Assembly: GCA_000320545.1 (NCBI GenBank)
Contig: ADNK01000750.1
Coordinates: 1 to 51,845, forward strand
Direction: 5' to 3'
Length of the DNA: 51,845 bases
From: Bigelowiella natans CCMP2755
Lineage: Eukaryota > Protista > Cercozoa
A model generated the notes under the pieces. That model saw nothing but the letters and a program-made list of their open reading frames with translations, was not told where the DNA came from and made no database searches. This document shows, one piece after another, positions 702 through 39,115 of the stretch; the stretch's first letter is position 1, and every line of letters starts with the position of its first letter. The position numbers were made by a program, and so were the translations under genes.

Positions 702-2968
702 AAGAGAGAACAGGAAGAAATCATTTCCAAAGATGGGGGATGGTCCTGCCGCAAGTGCACGGCCTATTCTTCATTCATCAGAGTCAAGAACAATGAGGTG
801 TACCGTCGTACGTTATATGACATCATTTTCAGCTTTTTGCCGCCGGTGCGGTAACCGAAAATGAGGCAGAGGAGGAGGAGGAGGAGAAGGGGAAAGCAGA
901 AAAGCGTATAGAGCAAAAGAGCAGCTTGGAAAGTGGAGACCAAGAGCAGCACCAGAATGGGGGAGTGAATGATGAGTACGGTGATGATAATAACAATACC
1001 ACTGATGATGACGACAAGAAGTTGACGATTACGCGGAAGAAGAAGACGGAGAAAATACGGCAACCATCACTCCTCGGTGTGCTCACAGTTGATAGGCGTG
1101 TATGCGCGCCGCATCAGAACAGATACGCAAACAAACATCGTAAATAATGTCGTCTAGCATATTCCAGAAGCAAATTGTTTGCTTTGTGCTTGCTTTGTTT
1201 TGGTGAAACATGTAGATAGCCTCTGCTCCTCTCTGTCCTCTCTTCTTCTTCTATTTCTTCTTCTCATTCTATAGCAGTGGTCGCACGGTGCGATGTGAAG
1301 CTATGCAACGGCATGCACGCATTCATGCGCATGGAGTGATAACACATATGACACTTTTCCCATCATAATCGCAGAGCTGACCGAGGAAGCGAATAGAATG
1401 GAGGATGAACTGTGGGGAGTCGTAGCGCAATACGCACAGTATATTTACTTTCACAAGGTGTATGGGATGATTGTTATTCCGAGTAGGGATTTAGGAAGAA
1501 TGTCTATTTAAGATACTAATGATGCACTCCTCGTCATGTAATCTTTGTTCTTTCTTCTAGGAAGAGAAGATGATGATATGAGATGAAAGATTGGATGTAT
1601 AATAATCGCAGATGATCTTGACTAACTTGAGTCGTTACTCTCCCCCCCCTCTCCATCTATCTCCCCTCTCCTGTTTAGGGGCTAGTGCTTACGGAAGAAG
1701 AGGTTGCTTCAATATTAGGCTGGCGCTCCCGCATTGCCAAGGTAGATTAGTTTTGTTATACACGGGAGAGAGGGGGGGGGGGGTGAGGGGTGGAGGGGAG
1801 AGATTCGACGTCTCAACTGTTTGCTGTATTAATCGTAATGATTCTTGCATATAAATGCTATGCCTACTACAGGATCGAGAGTCTCCGTATTGGCAGCTTC
1901 AGGCTTTGACTCGAGAGGTAGTAGATACATTTTGCGGTAGTAATTGAGGATAAAGAAACTTCGGCGAAGAACTATGTGTCCGGTGCATACTACGTACAGT
2001 CGCGCGTGCATGCAGCGCGATCGGGAGAAGTTTGATATATCTGAAGATGATATCCTCTCCTCCTCTCGCTCTCTCTCTCTCTCTATCTCCCTTTCATCTT
2101 TCGCTCATTGTAAATATGATGCACCGAAAATAATGTTAGATCTCGCGGTTTATGAAATCAATAAGGAGTCCATCAGGAATAGCAGCAACTTCACTGTTAT
2201 CATCAGGGTCCAGGTTGTGCCACGTTGCATGTAGTAGCAGCGAAGAACCCGCATATCATAATCCTCTTTATCTTGATTCACCATGTTTTTTTAATTCTGT
2301 CACATAATTTCCCACATCTTACTATTCGTGTAAATATCGTGTCCCTGCAAACGTGTATTTATACATTAAATCACATGATGTTTTTATCGGTTGTGAATGA
2401 TGTATTTGCAGCGTTGAAGGTGGTAGAGATCGCAAGGCTTTCTCAGCAATTCAAAAGCGGATTGAACAAGAAAGGAAAATCGCCCCAACGGTACGACGTA
2501 CCACACATCACATCTAAGCATGCAAAGAATAGTGCGAATAATCATATCAAGAGACATATCTCTGAATCGTTTTATGTCTTCGCCCTGTTCCCATTCATTC
2601 AATTGCAATCTTCGTTGTTCTTGTCGTCAACACTGTGCAGCGAATAAAGCAATATCTATCAATCGTGCATCGGGCGAAGGAGAAGCAGAGCAAACATCTC
2701 AAGCTGCTTGACAGTCAAATCCCTGTAATGATGAGCCAATTCTGTGTGCGTTTCTCAAATCTACGTGGATCCTGCACGATGAGCTTCTCTCCTATCCCAA
2801 CACCAATGGAAATAGCTCGAGACAGTGGTGTTTTCATGTTGAGTTGCCTTTTTCATCGGAGAAACGTGTGGATGATGACACTGACGTTGCAAACAAACAC
2901 CAAGTCCGCACGTTGGTTTTTGTGTTCGCGTCTGCCTCTGTCTCACGTGTGCTGACCCTGTGTGTGTG

Positions 2969-3011
<43 letters not shown>

Positions 3012-4735
3012 ATCGTGTGATTTAGGAGGAGGAAATGCGATTCTCAAACTTTGATCCGGATCGGATTCTGCTCAAACCTGAGCACACTACAGCTCCTCCA
3101 AAGGGGCAACTGTGACAAGGATGGATGCTGACTTTGGTGGAAACGTGCTGTTGTGTGAAGAACACGTTTGTCTGCGTTTTGCGCGAAGTGAAGCACCATC
3201 GTTTGTTGAAGTGAACAAAAGTTTGATTTGTGCGCAATCCGCACCAGCGCGTGTGAAGTGAAGCTCACTCGACCGCCAGCTGGTCAGGTGTGCTGCGAAC
3301 ATTGACTTGCTGTGCAACAGCTAGTCAGGTGTGCTGCGAACATTGACTTGCTGTGCAAAAGCGGAGCGCTTCCACTTCACACTCCAACGTCAACATCGCG
3401 CTGTCGCACGTGTGTGCACTCTGCAGTCCAAACTTTGACTTGTTCTGGACAGGAAGCACGCAGCAGTGGCGTGGCTTCCACGATGTGCCGCTCCTCCACT
3501 TGCACGATTGCCAGGTCTGGAGGTTGCCCCCACTGCTGCTGGACTGCGTGCGCACGTTGTCACCTGCTAGCCTGGTCATTGACAATTCGCGGTCAATCTC
3601 GCAATGGCTAGATGGTCTCGTGGGCACAAGTGACTTTTCAGTGAGGTCGTCAGCTGTGCCAAGCATGCGCACAACGCAACAAATCAGTGTTTCCAAACCG
3701 TGCGCGTGTTCACTGGAGCGCGTGTGTCGTGCGTTGAGACACGAACAGAACAGCAAGTGAATGTGCCGTCCAGCTGTGTCGCAAACCAATGCCTTCGTGT
3801 GTCTCCTTCTTGCTGACGCGATCATGCTGCAAAGTGGTTCGAAGCAGTGCACTGAGGTTCAAAGCAACCCACCAGAGTGGCAGAACAGCTTCCTGGGACA
3901 AAGAAAGCACCCCAAAACAACACCTGCCTGCAAGCGCAGGCGGACGAAATCACAGGCTGGAATCTGAGCCGATTTGAACGATTGAATCTAAATTTTCATG
4001 TCGTCTTCGTTAACAAGAGGCGGTTTTGTGCAGGATGTGTTTCGTAGTACCGGTAGTAGTTAGTGAGTACCTGATGACATTTTTGACTGACACCTGATGC
4101 TCCAACAAACAACAACAGATCCACCATCATCTAGACGACCTACCACTAGTCAGAGGGTAAAACTACTACTACTACTACTGCACATGCTACCACCACCACT
4201 ACCCACCCACTTGTGTGAACTAAGAGCATACTATTACTTTGCTAAACTGCCTTCGTTTTGTTTTGTTTTGTCAAGTAAGAAGATCTGCGTGAGCTGAAGG
4301 AGTCGGCTCCGAAAATAGCGCTACCCTGCTCAAACGGACGAGTCCTAGCCCCCTTCACCACTCTTCCTCTTCTTCATCGTCTTCTCCTTTTTTCAATAGA
4401 CCCACAAGCGGAATCATCATGGGCGCGTCGTCTTCATCAGAGGTTAGATTTCTAAATAATGTACACAAATTCGTCGTCTGAGCCGTTCCACAATCGTTGT
4501 ATTGTGAATTGATGCTACTACTGTTTTGCGTACCAGCCATTGTACAATCCGGTCAATGACCTCCGCGAAGGTACTTTATTCAACTACAAATTACTCGATA
4601 ACGTGTTTTAAGCGGAATGCACGGTGTTATTTCGGACATATTTCTACTGCCTGATGTTGTTAATGTTCGTGGTTATTGATGATTCAGAACCACAAGACCT
4701 GGAAGCAAGGATATCTTGTCAATCAATCCTCAGGT
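148..4735 (+). CDS. Multi-exon gene of unknown function, 5'-incomplete; possible RanBP2-like zinc finger near 735-865; middle part TA-depleted
   Basis: Series of short open exons bounded by AG/GT: ~1374-1458 ELTEEANRMEDELWGVVAQYAQYIYFHK, ~1680-1740 GLVLTEEEVASILGWRSRIAK, ~1874-1917 DRESPYWQLQALTRE, ~2412-2490 VEGGRDRKAFSAIQKRIEQERKIAPT, ~2641-2724 RIKQYLSIVHRAKEKQSKHLKLLDSQIP, ~3026-3102 EEEMRFSNFDPDRILLKPEHTTAPPK. WSCRKCT (~741) and FCRRCG (~835) could form one finger. No family recognised; ends uncertain. Confidence 0.45.
527..703. repeat. Compound (TA)n-(TG)n-(GA)n intronic microsatellite, typical of introns throughout the window
   Basis: Directly visible. The intact long (TA)n shows that TA loss is regional, not genome-wide. 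Confidence 0.95.
2815..3987. other. TA-depleted (hypermutated) tract inside a host-like gene
   Basis: Manual count: 5 TA dinucleotides in about 1170 bp (3 CTAG, 1 TTAG, 1 CTAC). Flanks have several per 60 nt. Confidence 0.9.
3277..3358. repeat. 41-bp tandem duplication
   Basis: cagctggtcaggtgtgctgcgaacattgacttgctgtgcaa followed by cagctagtcagg...; the copies differ by CTGG versus CTAG. Confidence 0.95.
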
Positions 4736-12521: not shown

Positions 12522-13316
12522 AGTCATGCGTGGCGTCTCCATTTTGCTATGTTTGATCCATCGATAATTGTTATCACACAGCTCATACGCTTTGGACTAT
12601 GCAGTATCGTCATGCAGGCTTTAAGTGTTTGGAAATGCGCAACTCTAATGATATTTTACAATGCAATAGCATCTACTTTATCGATTGCTATAGTTTTCTA
12701 AGCATGGGCATCCGGTACAGTAGGCGAATATTAGTGTCATGCCACCAGCTATATACATGCGTGTAGGCCCATTGTAACTTGCAAGGCGCCCGCAAAGGTA
12801 AGTGTGCACGTATTGAATAAGCTCGATTATCGCGCGCGGCGACGACCTCTACACCTGCTAGTAGCCTGCTGTGCAAATGAACTTCAGCGTGTTCGCAAAT
12901 AACACTTCACTACTTCATTTCGTCCTGCGCTATGCGCGAGCACATAATCATAGCATGCTAGCATGCGCCATCTACCAAACGCAATTATTTAGTAGTTTGT
13001 GTTACACATGCTTGTCTAAGCATATACAAGATGACACATGCCGCTCCACATCTATGCACATCATCTACTATTTGTCATCTAGACATGCTCGCTATCTAGC
13101 TAGGCGCCACTAAAATCTAGAAAATGTCTCGAGGGACAGAATGATGCGTTCCTCCCAACGCATGCATTCATGGTGTTTTTGAACAGGACTCAAGTAGCAG
13201 GTGCGATGTGCTTTTGCGTTGAACTTGCATGCCATGAGCAATGAATAACTAAGCATCGCATTTTTAAAAATGAATGGGTGCTGAGCTTAATTCGATCCAC
13301 AACACAAGAGAGCTCT

Positions 13317-16251
13317 CTATATACCAACGGAGGGTTGGATCGTCGGCTTGTGCCACTGCGACGTTCCAGACGATTGATGGAAATAAAATGGCACGCCCTC
13401 ATTCGTGTACTCTAATCGCCACCCTGGTGGCAGAGTAGCAGCTTGTCCGTTATGGGTAGTAGTTGGTTCCAAGGCAACTGCCTGAGCAATAACAGCAGGC
13501 TGCTGCTTTTGTCTCATCGTCTGCTGCTGCTGTGTGTGATGCGATCTGGTTCCGTGATTAACCATGAAGCTATTCTGGCGTCTGTTGCCTCCGCGTGGAA
13601 CTCCCCCTTTGCCTTGCCTACAGCAGCAGTAATATAGTGCGCAAGCGACCGCCAATACTACGAGAACCCCGACTACAATACCTGCTATTGAGCCCCCATT
13701 GTCCTCGCCGCTGTCTCCCCCTCCCCCACCACCACCCGAGCCCACTGTAGGAGAAGGGGCTGATGGGTTAAGAGACTCAGGCACACTCACGGTGGACACG
13801 GTCGTACCGAAGAACCCTGAGAGCTGTGCAGGTGAGTAGTTGGATAGAGCGCTAGCGGTTGCCTGTGGAGACTGTCCTTGGGACATGTGGAGAAATTCAA
13901 TGCTCATGCGAACACTCGCGGCGACGTAAGTCACTGTGAACGAGTCGTCCGCGACACCGAGGAGGCTGCTCAGTGTACTTCTGTACGTGGTCTGAAGAGT
14001 TGGCGTGACTTGCGCCAATGTCAATGTCGAGAACAGGATGCTCACTCGAAATTGCTCAATCGTCGGTGCTTGGGTGGGCGCCGTTGATGTGAATACGACA
14101 GGAGATGATGATGGAGAGTATGTACCACCTGGTGTAGTGGGTTCTCTTATAGGAATGCTAGGTACAGGCGTTGGGTATGAGCTCGGAAAGTTGGTAGGAA
14201 GATTTGTAGGGAAGGGGGTGGGATCGACTGTTGGCGTATTTGGACAGGTGGGAGGACTGCCTTCGCACAAAGAGTTGGATACAGTGCCACCTGACTCGTC
14301 TCTACAAATTGCATCGAAAGGACACACTCGGTACCATCGATACACCCTCAACTGAGAGCTGTCAACACAGGCTGGCGTGCCTCCTGCATCATACTGACTT
14401 TGGCATTGCTTTCCGCTACCACACGGGGTACCTGTCACAGCTAATGCTGGGAAGAAAGTGCTATAGCCACCACTCGCCGCAGTTGTGCAATGAATTAAGC
14501 TGCAATCCGCGTATCCATTGTTGAGATTCCTTGGATATATATACCCAGCTTGTGGCGGCGACACACAATTGTCGGCTGGGGAAACACAATGCCCCTCGTA
14601 ACACATTCCAGCAGCAGATATGCTGGTGGATGTGAGATCATTGCATGTAGTTCCAGTGGCGGAGAACAAGTCCATTGGGCACTGTCCTGAACTGCCGGTA
14701 CAAAACTCATCGACATCGCAATCCGAGTGTACGGATGAGCGACAGTTAGTAGTGGAGGGGAGAAATTGCCCGCTCTGGTCACAACAGGCTTCAGTGATGG
14801 CACATTGGCAGCCTGCATTTAACGTACAAGTACTCATATCACAACATGAATCTGTATTGCCAAAGCCGACGTCACACTGTTCACTATCGTCTATAATCCC
14901 ATCTCCACATATAGGCGCTGCGTTCCACTTTGATGCCCCAGAATCATTCTCTAGGCAACTATTCCCAGTGCTCCTGTAAGTTGCACGTGTCGATCCATTT
15001 GTATAAGTTGCATCGTTGGTTCCAGCAGTGAGGAAGATATTTATATCTTGCTTAGAAACGACAGAGAACTGGGTACGTACTGTTGCTTCATTCCCTCCTG
15101 GAGACATAATTGTTGGGGAACCTTGATAATCATGACTCATACCGAAGTTGTGACCCAGCTCGTGAGCCACGGTAGTTCCCACATGAATCACAGATCCGCC
15201 CCCCACCATATTAAGATTCATGGACAACTGATTATTACACATGCCCCACGTGTAAGCGATACCAGCTGTAGAACCACTCAGATTCTCGTCCGTGAACAGC
15301 GCGTAATTGTCGATGGGATTGTTGAAAACGCTTGCGAGGGTTGCCCTATTCGAGTACGAGAAGGATCTGAAGGATGTCAATAAGCATATCGCTCCAACCT
15401 CACCTGCGGCACAAGGATTGTCGCAAGCGGACCCACCGCTGCAGCACTGAGTCTCGCAGTTCGTAGTTGTGTAAGTTAGATCGGATGGGTTGGCATTGCG
15501 GAAGCTCAACTGCCCTATTAGCCTTGGGGTCACATAGCAGTTGAAAACACCATTTTCACGGAGTCCTGAATATGTTTGTCCTCCATAGACCCCACCAACG
15601 TATGCTAGGTACACGATATTGAACACGGCGGCTGAGTGTTGCTCCGTGTCGTCGCCACGAATTGATACACGCTTGAAGTCATTAACGACCAGGATGTCTA
15701 CGAATTTTCTGTTTGTCGCGGAGCTGTCGCACTCACCGGTGTCCAGTGGATGGATTTGAGAGGTAACTTTGGATAGGATCTTGAGGCGGGAGTTGTGTAC
15801 CTGCTCTTGTTGGTCATGGTGGTAGTGATCGTGAGACGAGTTCTCTACATGATGGTGATGATGGTGATGATGGTCATGTTGCGCATCCTTTCCTAATTTC
15901 TTCTGAGGATCTTTGAGGTTTCGATGATATCCTGCCTTCTTTAAACGAAACTTTCCATCCTGATCAACTTCAAGGTTTTCATGATTCCCGCACGTTAACC
16001 TAATATATGTTCACACATTTTTTGTTGATTAAACCAAGCTGTAGAGCATTATATATTTTATCCAATCGGGTTCATCAAAGAGTATAATAAAATGAAAAAT
16101 TAAGGTAGTACGTACTCTTGTTTCGGATTGTGGTGCTTGAGGTCGAAAATAATATGCCTAGCTTCCTTTCTGTCTGCAGCACCCTCATTAACATTATGAA
16201 TCTCGAAGGTTCCCATTTTGTGTTCCAGCACGCCCATGACCACTGATAATG

Positions 16252-16295
<44 letters not shown>

Positions 16296-16966
16296 AAGAT
16301 ATGTGTGTGTGGGGGGGCGGGTAGTAGGGGCTGTGAGCCATCCCTGAATTACAGCCGAAGTAACCGTATAATTTTCAGGCTAGGGGAAATATGCAACGAG
16401 CAGAGGCTACGAAATCTTTCAGTATACAACTGATACGGCGGTAGTCGAAAAGAGTGATATGTTTCTTTCAGGTGAAGTTGAGAAATCCTTATTATTTATT
16501 TTTGAGTCTAATTTCGGTCTATTACTTCCTGAGCAGGTACTGAAATAGGCTTGGCCGATATGCTCGTTATCATGAACTACCGCAGTTCCCTGGTAAAAGC
16601 AGTCCGGCACGCCAGGTGATTCTTTCACAACCGCCCCAGTTCCATCCATATGTACTGTCTTGTAGTCTGGATGGAACATCTCCGTCGTTCGAGAGCCCTT
16701 AACATGAAACACGCTCTGAAAAGCTTCGAAGGAAAATGAAACGGTTTCCCCTTTGAGGTGTTCCGTCTGAAGTTTAACTCCTCGCCCTTGTGGCGGGGAA
16801 AGCTCAATGTACCTTGGAGCAAAGTGATGCAAAATGTAACTTAAGTTTACGAATTCCAGGGCAGAGGTATTACAGCTTACTCAAAATATGATGTCTCAGC
16901 TGTGATATCTTCCAATCGTGACGCTCCCCCCAAGTTTATTGAAAGCAGTAACGAGAGCAAGATCAT
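13317..16966 (-). CDS. ADAM-family (M12B reprolysin) metalloprotease: signal peptide, prodomain, catalytic domain, disintegrin/Cys-rich, PT-rich stalk, TM, cytoplasmic WW domain
   Basis: MILLSLLLSINLGG signal peptide (ATG 16966); prodomain ...DCFYQGTAV...YFSTCSG (16832-16525); HELGHNFGMSHD zinc motif; CGDGIIDDSEQCDVG disintegrin start; TM IAGIVVGVLVVLAVACALYYCCC; LPPGWRLEYTNEGVPFYFHQSSGTSQWHKP WW domain; last exon about 2.67 kb. Confidence 0.92.
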
Positions 16967-17910
16967 GGATGTGCCGTGAACTTTCAAATGGTGAACAACA
17001 TCATCAATTAATCATTCATTTCGGGAGTTTTTTGGAATCACCTACCTCTCGCCCTCATCGCATGCAACCGGTTCAAAGATAGGTAGGAAGTATAAATGTA
17101 CTGTGCGTTGTTAAAACTTTCTCCGAGGTTGCTGTGCGCACACTCCCTCTTCCATACAATCAATACATGTAGACTAGTAGATCTACAATTACTCGTAGGA
17201 GATAAGCACAGGACGCTACCGAAACTGTGTCGATAGTAGCCCATTTCCATAAATGCGACATTCTAATTTCGCAAATATATAACATAATCAAAGGGGATTC
17301 AACAGGTTTCTGGGCACGCGCGTTACATGATTCACTAATAATAGCAAATCATGGACCTAGGAGGATTTCAATGGATTTCCAGCAATTTCCAGTGGATTTC
17401 CAATGAATTTTGGGCTGCTACTTGTTACACTTGAGCAGCTAAGGAGGATGGATGATTTAAGGACAAATTATCTACGGATACTACTGGGACCGACATTAAG
17501 CAAAACCTGCTAAGTTTGCCAGACTAGGAGTATCTTCAAGCAAATCATGATGATATAATACGATATCAAGAGGGTTTTTCGTGGCGCTTCTCACTTTATT
17601 ATGAGTAGTTTGTATCTTATGACTTGTTGAGATTGGTTTTTAAGGGTTGAAATTGAGGGTATTTCTCCTGTTCGCGCTACTCGAAAGGATCAGAACGATC
17701 TGATTATATTAGATCGCACGCTGTTCGTTGGGGGATCATCTGTGTTTAGGTAGGTGGGAAGCGGATGAGCTGGTTTGCAAGGAATTAGAATTTACTTTAT
17801 TGTGGCTGGAAAATGAAGGATAAACTATATTTATGTAGAAAAGTTTCCTGTTCATGTAGGTGGATGGGTGTATATGTGTATGTGTGTGTGTGTGTGTGTT
17901 ACATTTGCGT

Positions 17911-19849: not shown

Positions 19850-20190
19850 ATGTACATGTATGTGTGTATACATGAGACGGATGTAATGAACAATTAAATT
19901 TTTTCAATGGTCATCCTGATGTAGCTGTGCAATGCAGCGGCTACAGCGCTAATGCGCTAATGTTGTGTCTGTTGGTTTCTACCACTACGTGCGTGCTTCA
20001 TGCACTTGAAAGCGTCCTCGTTCGACCGATGATGATGTCGCGCATTGCGCGCGACGACAGTTCTTGTTTCTTTTTCAGCTTTTGTTAGCAGCTTTGTCTC
20101 GTCATTGCGATTCATGATTGCGCTCATTTGATTGCGCAATCTGATTTGTTGTTGACTGTGTGTTGGACATTGCAGGAGGTGATCCAAGTG
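19850..20190 (-). mobile_element. LINE (non-LTR retrotransposon) 3' fragment, copy 2: end of CCHC finger, 3' UTR and microsatellite tail
   Basis: MDHLDHLLQCPTHSQQQIRLRNQMSAIMNRNDETK... is homologous to DMDHILQCRKCGPQRLRINKQLTAIMDRNDETT of the adjacent copy; shared 3' UTR; (AT/AC)-type tail near 19855-19870. Confidence 0.75.
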
Positions 20191-21465
20191 ATCCATGTGT
20201 GCATGTATGAGACGGATGCAATGAAGTGTTCAAAATTTTCCAATGGCCATCTCCAATGTAGCTGTGCAATGCAGCGGCTACAGCGCTTACAAATTGTGTC
20301 TGTTTGTTTCCTTGGTCACATGTTGCATGCATGAAAATGCATCATGATTTGGTCTAGCATGTCGTGCTTTGCGCGCAGCTTTGCGAGTTGATTTTTCTGC
20401 GGTTGTGAGGCGCGTAGTCTCATCGTTGCGATCCATGATGGCCGTCAGTTGTTTGTTGATTCTGAGTCTCTGTGGTCCACATTTTCTGCATTGGAGAATG
20501 TGGTCCATGTCTTGCAATGTGTTGCATGTGTCGCACATTGCTTCCAATTCTGTGCGTTGTCCTCTGGACAGCAAAAAAGTTCCAAGGTACCGGTTGCCAA
20601 CACCACAGATGGCGCGCATCCATGATGTGGCAATGCTTGGCAGCTTCAATGTGATTCCTGTTGTGCGAGATCCAGGCATCCAGGCATGAAACCAAGTTTC
20701 TTCAAATGCATGGCCTTTGTTCCCTCTTGGCACCAGTTTGTTTTGAAATTGGATGTAGCGATCCGCATGATCGTTTTGTTGTGTGTGTTCAATTTCCTTT
20801 TCAGTGTCTTGCTTCTGGCACATGTGTCGTGGGGTGTTCCGCTCCAAGCAATTTGGTCGTGATCAAACTGAGTCGGCGGTACAAGGACACTCTGTTCCAC
20901 GACCTAGTTGTGTCATGCTAGCATGCCATTTGTGTTCCAGTGAGGATTCAACGTGGCATCCGAAAGAGCTCCAATTGAGTACTTCTTCTTCCACCACGTG
21001 TCCGTTGCCATCATTTTTGTCCACCCATGCATTGGTTCGCAACCATGCTTTGGTGCATTGAACTTGTGTGCGACAACGTGGTGGCAACATTGCTAGATTG
21101 CCGCTAGCACATGGGGTGTGTCATTGGAAATGGATCCTGGCAATCCCAGCACTCTTTTGAGTGTTTGTGATTCCATGGAATCCAGCAGCTTTGTTTTGAG
21201 ATTTTTGCGGGACCTCCATGTGCTAGATGTGGGTGCGACATGTCTGCTTGTGGCTGTGAACCACGTGTTGCAAAACTTCATTCTTGTGTTGAATGGCATT
21301 TGTGATCGCATGGAGCACAGCCTGAGCAAGAATCTTCTCTTTTTCTGCAGCTTCAGATGTGCAACAAGGGCGTGCTTTTCGAAAGTTAATATTTCGTCAA
21401 ACCACAGTCCCAAGCATTTGCCACATTCTTTCCTTTTCATTTTTCCTTGCAGGTTGAGTGATGTG
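20190..21465 (-). mobile_element. 5'-truncated, degenerate LINE: end of RT domain, C-terminal CCHC finger and 3' UTR
   Basis: KECGKCLGLWFDEILTFEKH...RLCS...KFCNTW...RVLGLP matches the LINE RT C-terminus (YLG.xxD..LT...H) if C is read as Y; WMRAICGVG...CDTCNTLQDMDHILQCRKCG is the LINE ORF2 C-terminal zinc finger. Stops or frameshifts are present. Confidence 0.85.
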
Positions 21466-22057
21466 TTCATGTGTGTACATGCATTGATGTGTGTACACAT
21501 GTGTGCACACACACACACATCTCATGTACACAGGCCACATTGCTGTGTCCATTGCAAGTGTGGCTATGACATATATGTATGTACACAATGTGCATAGCAC
21601 ATGTTACATGTACATATATGTGCACCATCCACATTGCTCTGTGTCCATTGTTACAAACACGTGGACGCAACGTTTCTCCATCGATCCGAGTGCATGACCA
21701 CAAATGCTTACACGTACTAGCTTAGAATGGTTCCTACATTCCATTGCCATGGACAATACAACATTGTGTCTGATCATGTGCACCACGCATGCACATCACG
21801 CACTGCTGTCGTCGCGCATGCGGGGGGCGCGGATCGAAGGTGCGTTTATACGCACCGAATAAAGGCCGTCGCACATCCAAGCACACAACAGCACACATGT
21901 ACACCCTAGAGAAGAGAGAAATTGACTAGTATCTGTCCATATGTACGAACCCTCTGTGTAATTGACTTCATAGACTTAATCCATGACAGTGTCGGACGCT
22001 ACATTTAGTGCACATTCCAGTGTAACCCATGCTAGCATGCTCCTCTGACCTACTTAC

Positions 22058-35862: not shown

Positions 35863-36039
35863 TATCTCCAAAAGACAGTCTACTGATGTGAGATGGTGTA
35901 GGGGATATCTAGCTAAGTGTACTTCTGGCTTGGCCCATTTCTCCTCTTATGCCGTTCATTGTGTGTTGCTGCATGCAGAGGAATCTGTTGACAAGTAACC
36001 CGGAAAGAATGGTGACATATCATCACAGCATGATCAAAC

Positions 36040-36726
36040 TTGCTTGCCTTTAGCGGTTGAATTATTTGAGCCAGAACTCTGCACGCAACACGCTACTGCT
36101 CGGCCTTACATCGACCCCAGTAGCCCGCACTTGCCAGCTTGCTGCAAAATTCAACACAAAAGTTCGGACAAATTTGCCATTCAGCCGAGCCAACAAAGCT
36201 TGACTAAACTGGCATGTGCCGCATGGCATCATCCATGTTGAAATGCTGGCATTCCCTTAGCTAGCTTGGCTTGGTCTTCTCTAGGAAGTTCGAACAGCGT
36301 GCGTGACATTGCATTGCATGCTTGGTGTCGTCCCAGGCCATGCTGCTGCAGTCTGCACTAGCTAGCTAGCATCGCACAGAGCAGCAGGTGTGCCAAAAGG
36401 CCAAAACTAGGGTTTGCACGTCATTGGATCAAATCATCGTGTTCACAACGTGCCACACCTCGATCAAACCCTGCAATGGCCTCCAGCGCGATCGCACGCA
36501 GCTGCGATGCGGCCGCGCGGCCGCGGCCAGCCATGGCTGGCCTGCTAGCTGAAAAGATGTCTGCACGCTTTTGTGGCTCGTTCAAAGCCGCCTAGGTCAA
36601 GATTTGCGGCCATTTGTGGCTTTTTGAAGGACCGCTCTGAGGTGCCAGAGCCAGAAAATTCTGGCCATGTTGGTGCACAATGCAACTGTGCACGCTGGCA
36701 TGCAAGGCACAGCCAAGCGACTTGAG
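36040..36726. repeat. Unclassified TA-poor, CTAG-rich repeat-like sequence upstream of the LTR
   Basis: TA frequency declines toward the LTR; ctagctagctag runs; GC-rich palindromes at 36509-36542; no coding signal. Confidence 0.4.
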
Positions 36727-37130
36727 TGTCAGCGGTGTGGCGCCACCCACGATTGAGAAGCTGTCGCAGTGTGCACACGCCCGTTCACACTGCACGCTGC
36801 GCTGTGCACATCTAGACATCCAAACATCACTGCACGCTGCGCTGTGCACATGCGCATGGAAGTTCTCAGAACTTCGAGAATCTTCCAGAGAATTCGAGAA
36901 CATTCCGGAAGCTTCGAGAATCTTCCACGATGTTCGAGAATTCTCCAGAAGCTTCGAGAGCATTCCGGAAGCTTCGAGAATCTTCCAGAACACTCGAGAG
37001 AATTCGAGAGAGTTCTGGAGGATTCGAGAATGTTCGCGAATGCGCCGGAACCCAACGCGCACATACACGTAGCGCAATGAGTTGACAACAATCATCAGAA
37101 TTCAAACGGACGCAGAACTGCGTGTTGACA
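36727..37130 (+). repeat. Putative 5' LTR (about 404 bp)
   Basis: 5-bp terminal inverted repeat TGTCA/TGACA; internal 24-bp direct repeat cactgcacgctgcgctgtgcacat; degenerate gaagcttcgagaatcttccag subrepeats at 36860-37040. Confidence 0.7.
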
Positions 37131-37371
37131 CTTGGTGACATCAGCACAGTCCCGATCAGCGCACACAAAGCGAAGCAGCTGCCCCCAGCCCGCTGAAAGG
37201 TCACGATCCTCAAGAGGACTTGCTGGAGAACCAAGAAAGAAAAAGGAACCAAGCAACCCCCCCCACCACCCCTTCCAACTGAAAGGGCCAAAGCGACAAC
37301 AGCATTCCCTCAGCCAATCTTCGGTCAAGCCTTCACAACACTGAAAGACAAAGAAACAGGAACAAGACACC

Positions 37372-38470
37372 ATGTCAGACAAGCAGATGGACTCCCTGCT
37401 GAAAAACTTCACCCTCAAGTGCGATGGTGGCAACTGCAAACCCCACACGTGCAAGCCAATGTCTGCTTTCGAAGCAGCCGATTTGGAATCATGCTTCAAT
37501 GTGAACGTGGAAACAGGAGGAAAGGTGACAGAAGTGAACGCACGCACCGACCCTGCTCACCGACGAGAAGTGCTCAAGCTTTCTCCAGAGCAATTTGACA
37601 TCCTCAACCCTGAACCTGAAGGAAGAGGATCACAAGAGAAGGTGAACAAAAGAAAGAGAGGAAGGTTCTTTCTCACAGCTGCTCTGCCTGACAAACTCTT
37701 CGATTTGCTCGAAGGAAAATCCAAAGATGCAGCAGTCACCTCAGCAGCCTTGCTGGAGAAGTGCGAGCCTGCCAATCCTGCAGCCGTCAAAAAACTTTGT
37801 TCGAAGCTGAGTGACACAAACACGGGTCAGTGCAATGCTAGAATGGAGACTTTGCAAAGCATCGTTCTGACCTTGACTCCACTGCAAGAAGACTTCGAGT
37901 ACAGCACGAAGGATGCTCCGACAACCAAGCGCTTGCCACTCCACTTCGAGGACCAGCACCTAGCGAAAAATGCGAGACCACAGTGACAGTTGTCAACAAC
38001 AAGAAAGACGTCACCTTCGACTCTGCAGTGGACATGATCCGTTCCCACACGAACTCCCGATCGCTTGATGACGGGCAGAAACCTTCAAAGAAACACACAG
38101 GACACGCAGCTGCAGAACACAAGTGCGCAAGGATGCACGATGGCTTGGAGAAAAGGCCAAACGAACTCACTGGTCAGCTGAAGACCTGCAAGAGGAAACT
38201 CAGAAAAGGAAAGAACAGGCATGACAGCGGAGCACATCAAGATGACTCCAAGAAGCAAAAGAGAGAAGACCACTTCTCAAACTCAAAGAAAAGAACAAAG
38301 TGCCATCACTGTGGCAAGAAAGGACACTGGGAGAAAGAGTGCAGAAACAAGACAAGAGACGAAGGCAAGCAAAACAAAGGAAAACACCGTTCTTTCATTG
38401 ACCATGGCTCTCCTTCCCAAAGACTTTCCCACATCAACAAGATGGCACGCGACAGTTCTCACCTGCAAAC
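37372..38470 (+). pseudogene. gag: Copia gag pseudogene (frameshift near 37960)
   Basis: LKCDGGNCKPH...MSAF resembles the Copia gag N-terminal (F/Y)DGxNY..W motif with Y->C/H; LPDKLFDLL...ALLEKCEP; EKCETTVTVV; knuckle CHHCGKKGHWEKEC (CX2CX4HX4C). One Tyr in about 400 codons. Confidence 0.8.
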
Positions 38471-39115
38471 GCTGAAGTGCACCCATGAGCCTTTGATCCT
38501 TCTTGTTTGCAAGTGTTTGCAAACACCAAACACTTGCAAACCATTGTTTGATTGCTTCAAACACTGCGCGAGCTCTTGAATCGAAAACAAGCATTTGATG
38601 ATTTGAACAAACAATGTTTGGTCAAACACGTTTGCAAACATGTTTGTTTTCAAGTGGTTGTGCCTAGCTAGCTAGCTCTGGTCAACATCTGTCCATGGCT
38701 AGATTGTGGCTGGCGATGCCGTTTGTGACTGCTTGCAAACGACATGCAGGCGGTGGGTCGATTGAAATGGTAATTGATCGTGCATCAAATGCTTCACCAG
38801 TCGAGAGCGCTGAAGCATCGCACAGCAGCAGTTTTTGAATGCAATGCAAGGCACACGGGTGCTAGCGTGCGTCTAAAAGCAAGTACATGAACACAGCACT
38901 ACCCTGTGTGGCTACACAGAATTGCATCATGTAGGCTCGTATTATTTTGTGATGTTCAGCGGTATAAAAAAACTGCATTGATTACAGCCTCGCCCGATCC
39001 GCTATCATATCGTGTATGCATGCTAGATCTCGTGCGCTGTGAAGTATGAGATGAAATACTACAAGACGCCGCCGGAAATAAACATTCCTGTAAGATTAAA
39101 GACATTATCCAGAAC

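Follow-up and report, generated by a model that had tools for sequence, protein, structure and literature searches.

A probable footprint of TpA-specific hypermutation on a short block of non-coding DNA in Bigelowiella natans

A recent study described de novo hypermutation of the dinucleotide TpA to TpG or CpA in the cercozoan Bigelowiella natans, and located clusters of TpA depletion across its genome (Mettrop et al. 2026, bioRxiv 10.64898/2026.01.13.699255). In two viral regions, 230 of the 231 de novo mutations were A to G or T to C, nearly all of them listed at TpA, and both strands were affected. The changes arise in chromosomal DNA that is single-copy, in bursts and in some lines only, and the main target is a single-copy viral insertion, so targeting by something other than the identity of a transposable element (TE) is already implied. 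Adenine deamination was inferred by the authors, with the ADAT2-like Bn78255 as a candidate, and about 81% of the genes in TpA-poor clusters were found to be unannotated (Mettrop et al. 2026). That a eukaryote subjects selected DNA to a regulated hypermutation, specific for TpA and directed towards GC, is remarkable, but such a process has already been described. Here we describe a TpA-depleted block of 1.17 kb near the left end of contig ADNK01000750.1 of B. natans CCMP2755 (51,845 nucleotides, analysed over its whole length and referred to below as the window). The process is a published one, and the block is a further, small and non-coding instance of it.

The block shares with the clusters of that preprint the target dinucleotide, the two products, the signature of low TpA with high CpA plus TpG, and the organism; most predicted genes in the published clusters are likewise without annotation. 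It differs from them in several respects. It is shorter than three 1-kb windows, it is non-coding and has yielded no viral or TE domain, and it is near saturation, with an observed/expected ratio (rho) for TpA of 0.08, compared with 0.45 in the active region of a nucleocytoplasmic large DNA virus (NCLDV). Moreover, TpA is spared within CTAG, a word that, like "context", does not occur in the main text of the preprint (term search of bioRxiv 10.64898/2026.01.13.699255).

Two other systems invite comparison. Repeat-induced point mutation (RIP) of fungi is also a transition hypermutation that acts regionally on a specific dinucleotide, has sharp limits and inactivates unwanted DNA. However, RIP converts CpA to TpA and thereby creates TpA, whereas the block shows a 10-fold depletion of TpA together with an enrichment of CpA. 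RIP also requires a duplicated sequence, whereas the block has no duplicate in the window and the main target of the preprint is single-copy. Hyper-editing by ADAR (A-to-I, favouring sites with a 5' U and fixed via reverse transcription) likewise yields A to G with T or U directly 5'. In contrast to ADAR, the joint excess of TpG and CpA within one tract suggests that both DNA strands were affected, the changes reported in the preprint arise in chromosomal DNA of non-retro elements, and no long inverted repeat or hairpin able to form double-stranded RNA was found in the tract.

Composition and limits of the block

The tract from 2815 to 3987 (1173 nt) retains only five TpA, at positions 3023, 3088, 3322, 3568 and 3609, where 55-92 would be expected. 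Its TpA ratio of 0.08 compares with 0.85 for the whole window, while TpG and CpA stand at 1.84 and 1.57, respectively, and CpG, at 0.85, is not enriched. At the TpA rate of the window, a count of at most five TpA has a Poisson probability of 6e-33; with the expectation corrected for the A and T content of the tract itself, the probability is 5e-18. Beyond the block, the nearest TpA lie at 2813 on the left and 3989 on the right, and the flanking DNA on both sides carries one TpA per 10-40 nt, hence the sharp edges. Measured against window-wide ratios, the tract lacks 50 TpA and has gained 53 TpG and 21 CpA. This match of loss and gain fits a conversion of TpA to TpG and CpA on both strands.

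A reading of the letters alone (the sequence-only reading) had placed a TA-free hypermutation tract at 2815-3987. The two bounding TpA show these limits to be exact, and the dinucleotide ratios, the mass balance and the sharp edges bear out the footprint; the term "TA-free" is nearly right, in that depletion is strong and five TpA remain. We consider it highly probable that the block is a footprint of TA-specific hypermutation on non-coding DNA.

The preprint defined clusters by 1-kb windows with a TpA rho of at most 0.43 and a joint CpA plus TpG rho of at least 1.52, in runs of at least three consecutive windows. Positions 3001-4000 (0.11 and 1.65, respectively) pass both cut-offs, and this is the single 1-kb window that qualifies. 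The block falls outside the cluster rule because it measures 1.17 kb; the rule is a criterion of detection in that study and not a property of the process. Footprints therefore exist below the 3-kb cluster size of the preprint.

Two repeats within the tract bear on the nature of the change. A (TG)26 microsatellite supplies 26 of the 53 surplus TpG. We considered whether it could be a converted (TA)n run and rejected this, as TpA units hit independently should yield a mixture of TG and CA, and runs of (TG)n are also frequent beyond the tracts. Two tandem copies of 41 nt differ by one base, CTGG (G at 3282) in one and CTAG (A at 3323) in the other. This lone difference is thus between a TpG and a surviving TpA, and it is the sole hint within the locus as to the direction of change.

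The tract lacks a coding signal. Its Fourier power at period 3 was 0.90 times the mean, a level that 42% of shuffles equalled or exceeded, compared with signal-to-noise ratios of 10.7 for an exon of an ADAM-like gene in the same window, 4.7 for another open reading frame (ORF), and 2.8 and 2.2 for the window's other two TpA-poor tracts. No Pfam match was obtained for the ten longest stretches of the tract that are free of stops, a protein homologue search with a 177-amino-acid (aa) ORF found none, the tract matched no family in Rfam, and scans of IMG/VR with two tract ORFs gave no match. Long ORFs are in any case to be expected here, because TAA and TAG are gone. To the right, a candidate start ATG of an ABCG-type half-transporter gene lies 431 nt beyond the edge of the tract, and the block is best read as non-coding DNA in the spacer upstream of that gene.

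Surviving TpA sites and a possible course of conversion

The contexts in which TpA survives were counted over three tracts of the window pooled together (2815-3987, 19990-21500 and 36030-38665). Among the survivors, 15 of 34 lie in CTAG (16 of 35 with slightly different handling of the edges), compared with 3.7% of background TpA (Fisher p 6.5e-13), and a further 6 of 34 lie in GTAC, compared with 4.3% of the background (Fisher p 0.003). The density of CTAG is in effect kept, at 2.84 per 1000 inside the tracts vs 2.90 in the background. TpA flanked by A or T, on the other hand, has been nearly wiped out (2 of 34 survivors vs 34% of the background, p 2e-4). When the nucleotide directly 3' of each mutated A was tallied by hand for scaffold 10 (Table S2 of the preprint), G accounted for 20, C for 52, T for 67 and A for 67 of the 206 cases. 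As G is the rarest of these (20/206), the de novo mutations point in the same direction as the sparing of CTAG. A tetranucleotide balance, in which NTAN lost was set against NTGN plus NCAN gained, showed no positive correlation and was not used as evidence, because a background rich in A+T and in microsatellites poorly represents the ancestral make-up of the tracts. The survival of CTAG may reflect either a preference of the enzyme or protection of the site. The concentration of survivors in this context narrows the range of models for the enzyme or for a modification that protects the site.

A course of events consistent with these counts can be proposed. The unit marked for mutation would be a discrete insertion of some age, for example a fragment of mobile or foreign DNA that does not code for protein. 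On each strand, A following T would be changed to G, read as TpA to TpG or TpA to CpA, and the presence of both products in excess within one tract suggests that both strands were affected. Conversion would have continued until roughly 90% or more of the TpA had been lost, with survival of TpA within CTAG and, less markedly, within GTAC. That the change at this locus ran away from TpA is taken from the de novo mutations of the preprint, and deamination would be its likely chemistry.

Origin of the block

We tentatively prefer to see the block as an old, discrete insertion, for instance a non-coding fragment derived from a mobile or foreign element, that hypermutation has nearly saturated; the chance of this being correct appears close to even. 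The preference derives from the sharp edges and from a 9-nt direct repeat, TTTTCATGT, the two copies of which bracket the TA-free span almost exactly (Table 1). The pair could be a target-site duplication and is taken as a hint of one, given that a non-trivial repeat of at least 9 nt in the same geometry occurs at about 4% of positions along the window. The sequence-only reading had seen no TE motif in the tract, and this stands in the sense that none is recognisable: neither Pfam, nor IMG/VR, nor the structure of the ends gave a signal. A saturated footprint can thus sit a few hundred bases from a candidate gene start without recognisable TE or viral content.

Several points weigh against an insertion. 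No second copy was found within the 52-kb window: a blastn search of the window with the tract as query (word size 9) returned only (TG)n matches, and neither exact matches of at least 28 nt after collapsing purines and pyrimidines, nor blastn with TG, CA and TA collapsed, rose above shuffles. The block has no terminal inverted repeats, the tract contains no inverted repeat longer than 18 nt, and no TG...CA termini with matching flanks of 4-6 nt were found at the block. TE and viral protein signals were not found either. The case for insertion rests on the edges and on a repeat with the chance rate given above, and the tract is shorter than the clusters of the preprint (at least three consecutive 1-kb windows).

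The chief competitor, possible but distinctly less probable, is that the block is host spacer or intron DNA and not foreign at all, marked by a local signal such as a heterochromatin patch or small RNA from convergent or antisense transcription. The 9-nt repeat would then be a coincidence, as its chance rate allows. Such an origin would agree with the failure to find any TE or viral feature, and the (TG)26 microsatellite is typical of the genome's own non-coding DNA. However, the very sharp edges on both sides suit a discrete unit better than they suit a spreading mark, and the window's other two TpA-poor tracts look element-derived. The general picture is left unchanged by this locus unless the tract is native host DNA. 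A stronger form of the same idea, which we regard as improbable, is that the machinery can act on short native non-coding DNA beside an active gene even where nothing foreign or repeated is present, and that the complete survival of CTAG and the partial survival of GTAC reflect site-specific protection of these palindromes, for example by adenine methylation, beyond any preference of an enzyme for particular neighbouring bases. If true, a native target together with palindrome protection would offer a way into the targeting signal as well as the chemistry.

A still poorer fit is the proposal of the sequence-only reading itself, taken to mean that exons and introns of a host gene were hypermutated in place, which may have left exons that are damaged or recoded yet continuous with intact exons on both sides. 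On the left, two open segments bounded by AG and GT (2412-2491 and 2641-2725) can indeed be joined in frame, and an acceptor-like AG falls exactly at the left edge of the tract (2814-2815). These features notwithstanding, the proposal is quite unlikely. The tract is without coding periodicity (signal-to-noise 0.90), and neither its own stop-free pieces nor those to its left have given a Pfam match or a homologue; ten left-flank pieces were searched against Pfam, and a homologue search with an acidic left-flank piece (821-1144) found none. With the segment 2566-2952 as query, a HMMER scan of 1.84 billion representative proteins returned two matches only (P0008 and P0009). Both are long tandem-repeat proteins, aligned at 32-33% identity over several stretches, and were rejected as homologues because such chance matches are inflated by the repeats. 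No peptide matching the left-flank "exons" was found, though for another gene of the window the collections do include a protein of this species that derives from a transcript. No gene is confirmed to the left of the tract, and on the right the ABCG gene has a separate candidate start of its own, so continuity with a gene on both sides is not supported.

The same reading had taken Cys and His in place of Tyr as a sign of exons. All six frames of the tract have 0-1 Tyr and 11-15% Cys plus His, compared with 6.5-9% Cys plus His in the flanks. Since TAT and TAC are impossible without TA, the loss of Tyr and the excess of Cys and His follow in every frame, and the pattern is not a separate observation. 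A score for codon usage, with some 1,000 codons from the window as its training set, failed to tell even the frame of a known ABCG exon; it gave no information on the host gene and was dropped. Exact-pattern scans of JGI metagenome and transcriptome contigs with a 26-mer of the tract (2860-2885) and with the ABCG start (4410-4435) gave 0 matches, and, having no positive control, carry no weight.

Finally, composition or selection, as in a promoter island or a structural element, could account for the paucity of TA in place of a mutational footprint. This would suit the position of the tract 431 nt upstream of a gene start and its G+C content of about 53% compared with about 42% in the flanks, but it is hardly credible, as TpA alone is affected while CpG is not enriched (0.85), the rise in TpG and CpA equals the fall in TpA, only three such tracts occur in 52 kb and the other two are periodic in the coding sense and element-like, and no Rfam family was matched.

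Neighbouring genes and other features of the window

Table 1. Positions of the block, its repeats and related features in the window.
Feature	Position	Strand	Remarks
TpA-erased block	2815..3988		5 TpA left over 1173 nt; excess of TpG and CpA; all tests run indicate non-coding DNA
Left copy of the 9-nt direct repeat TTTTCATGT	2831..2839	+	possible target-site duplication
(TG)26 microsatellite	2959..3010	+	inside the tract; type frequent elsewhere in the window
Two tandem 41-nt copies	3277..3358	+	one-base difference: CTGG vs CTAG
Right copy of the 9-nt direct repeat TTTTCATGT	3993..4001	+	possible target-site duplication
Candidate first coding exon (MGASSSSE) of the ABCG-type half-transporter gene	4419..4442	+	in-frame stop at 4290
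Second TpA-poor tract	~19990..21500	-	ORF-rich; zinc-knuckle-like repeats; weak coding periodicity; retroelement-like by eye only
Third TpA-poor tract	~36030..38665	+	gag-like ORF with CCHC knuckle; weak Pfam match, E ~1e-3

The ABCG-type gene extends on the plus strand from its candidate start at 4419 to about 7560 and is divided into numerous very short exons. Downstream of the candidate start, a by-eye reading recognised a Walker A motif (SGAGKTT), a Walker B motif (IIFLDEPTSGLD) and then TIHQPS. The candidate N-terminus, MGASSSSE, resembles a myristoylation signal.

In the second TpA-poor tract, the minus strand at 19960-20862 encodes two similar C-terminal segments, each with a Cys/His knuckle (ILQCRKCGPQRLRINKQLTAIMDRNDETTRLTTAEK and LLQCPTHSQQQIRLRNQMSAIMNRNDETKLLTKAEK). 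They look like the partly duplicated 3' end of a retroelement, a likeness that Pfam does not support. The gag-like ORF of the third tract, with its CCHC knuckle, lies at 37983-38579. Upstream of it, in the non-coding left part of that tract, a degenerate tandem repeat with units of about 20-30 nt (GAAGCTTCGAGAATCTTCCAGA) can be seen by eye at 36860-37040. A 13-nt repeat of the (CTAG)3 type, CTAGCTAGCTAGC, occurs at 36358-36370 and again at 38664-38676, near both ends of the third tract, and CTAGCTAGC has 8 matches in the window where 0.29 would be expected. The 13-nt repeat could be a terminal motif of an element or simply surviving CTAG.

The ADAM-like gene, on the minus strand at 13090-17219, encodes reprolysin and disintegrin domains and a C-terminal WW domain. 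A transcript contig from JGI dataset 3300017192 (3663 nt, encoding the 1043-aa protein P0010) aligns to the window with splicing, as four blocks with 99.3-100% identity; the blocks of this contig (L001) in the ADAM-like gene are 17219-16878, 16812-16526, 16242-16114 and 15999-13090. For a 769-aa ADAM-like ORF at 13317-15626 on the minus strand, the best named homologue is from the chlorarachniophyte Norrisiella sphaerica (MMETSP0113), at 42% identity. A peptide encoded in the window, P0001, is listed under the source mmetsp.

The nuclear genome of B. natans has a G+C content of 44.9%, rising to 48.8% in exons and falling to 40.9% in introns (bioRxiv 10.64898/2026.01.13.699255), and the window agrees with these values. 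Microsatellites are very dense throughout the window, where (TG)n, (TC)n, (TA)n and trinucleotide runs occur in spacers and introns. The trinucleotide runs translate to poly-D, poly-N, poly-T, poly-M and poly-I.

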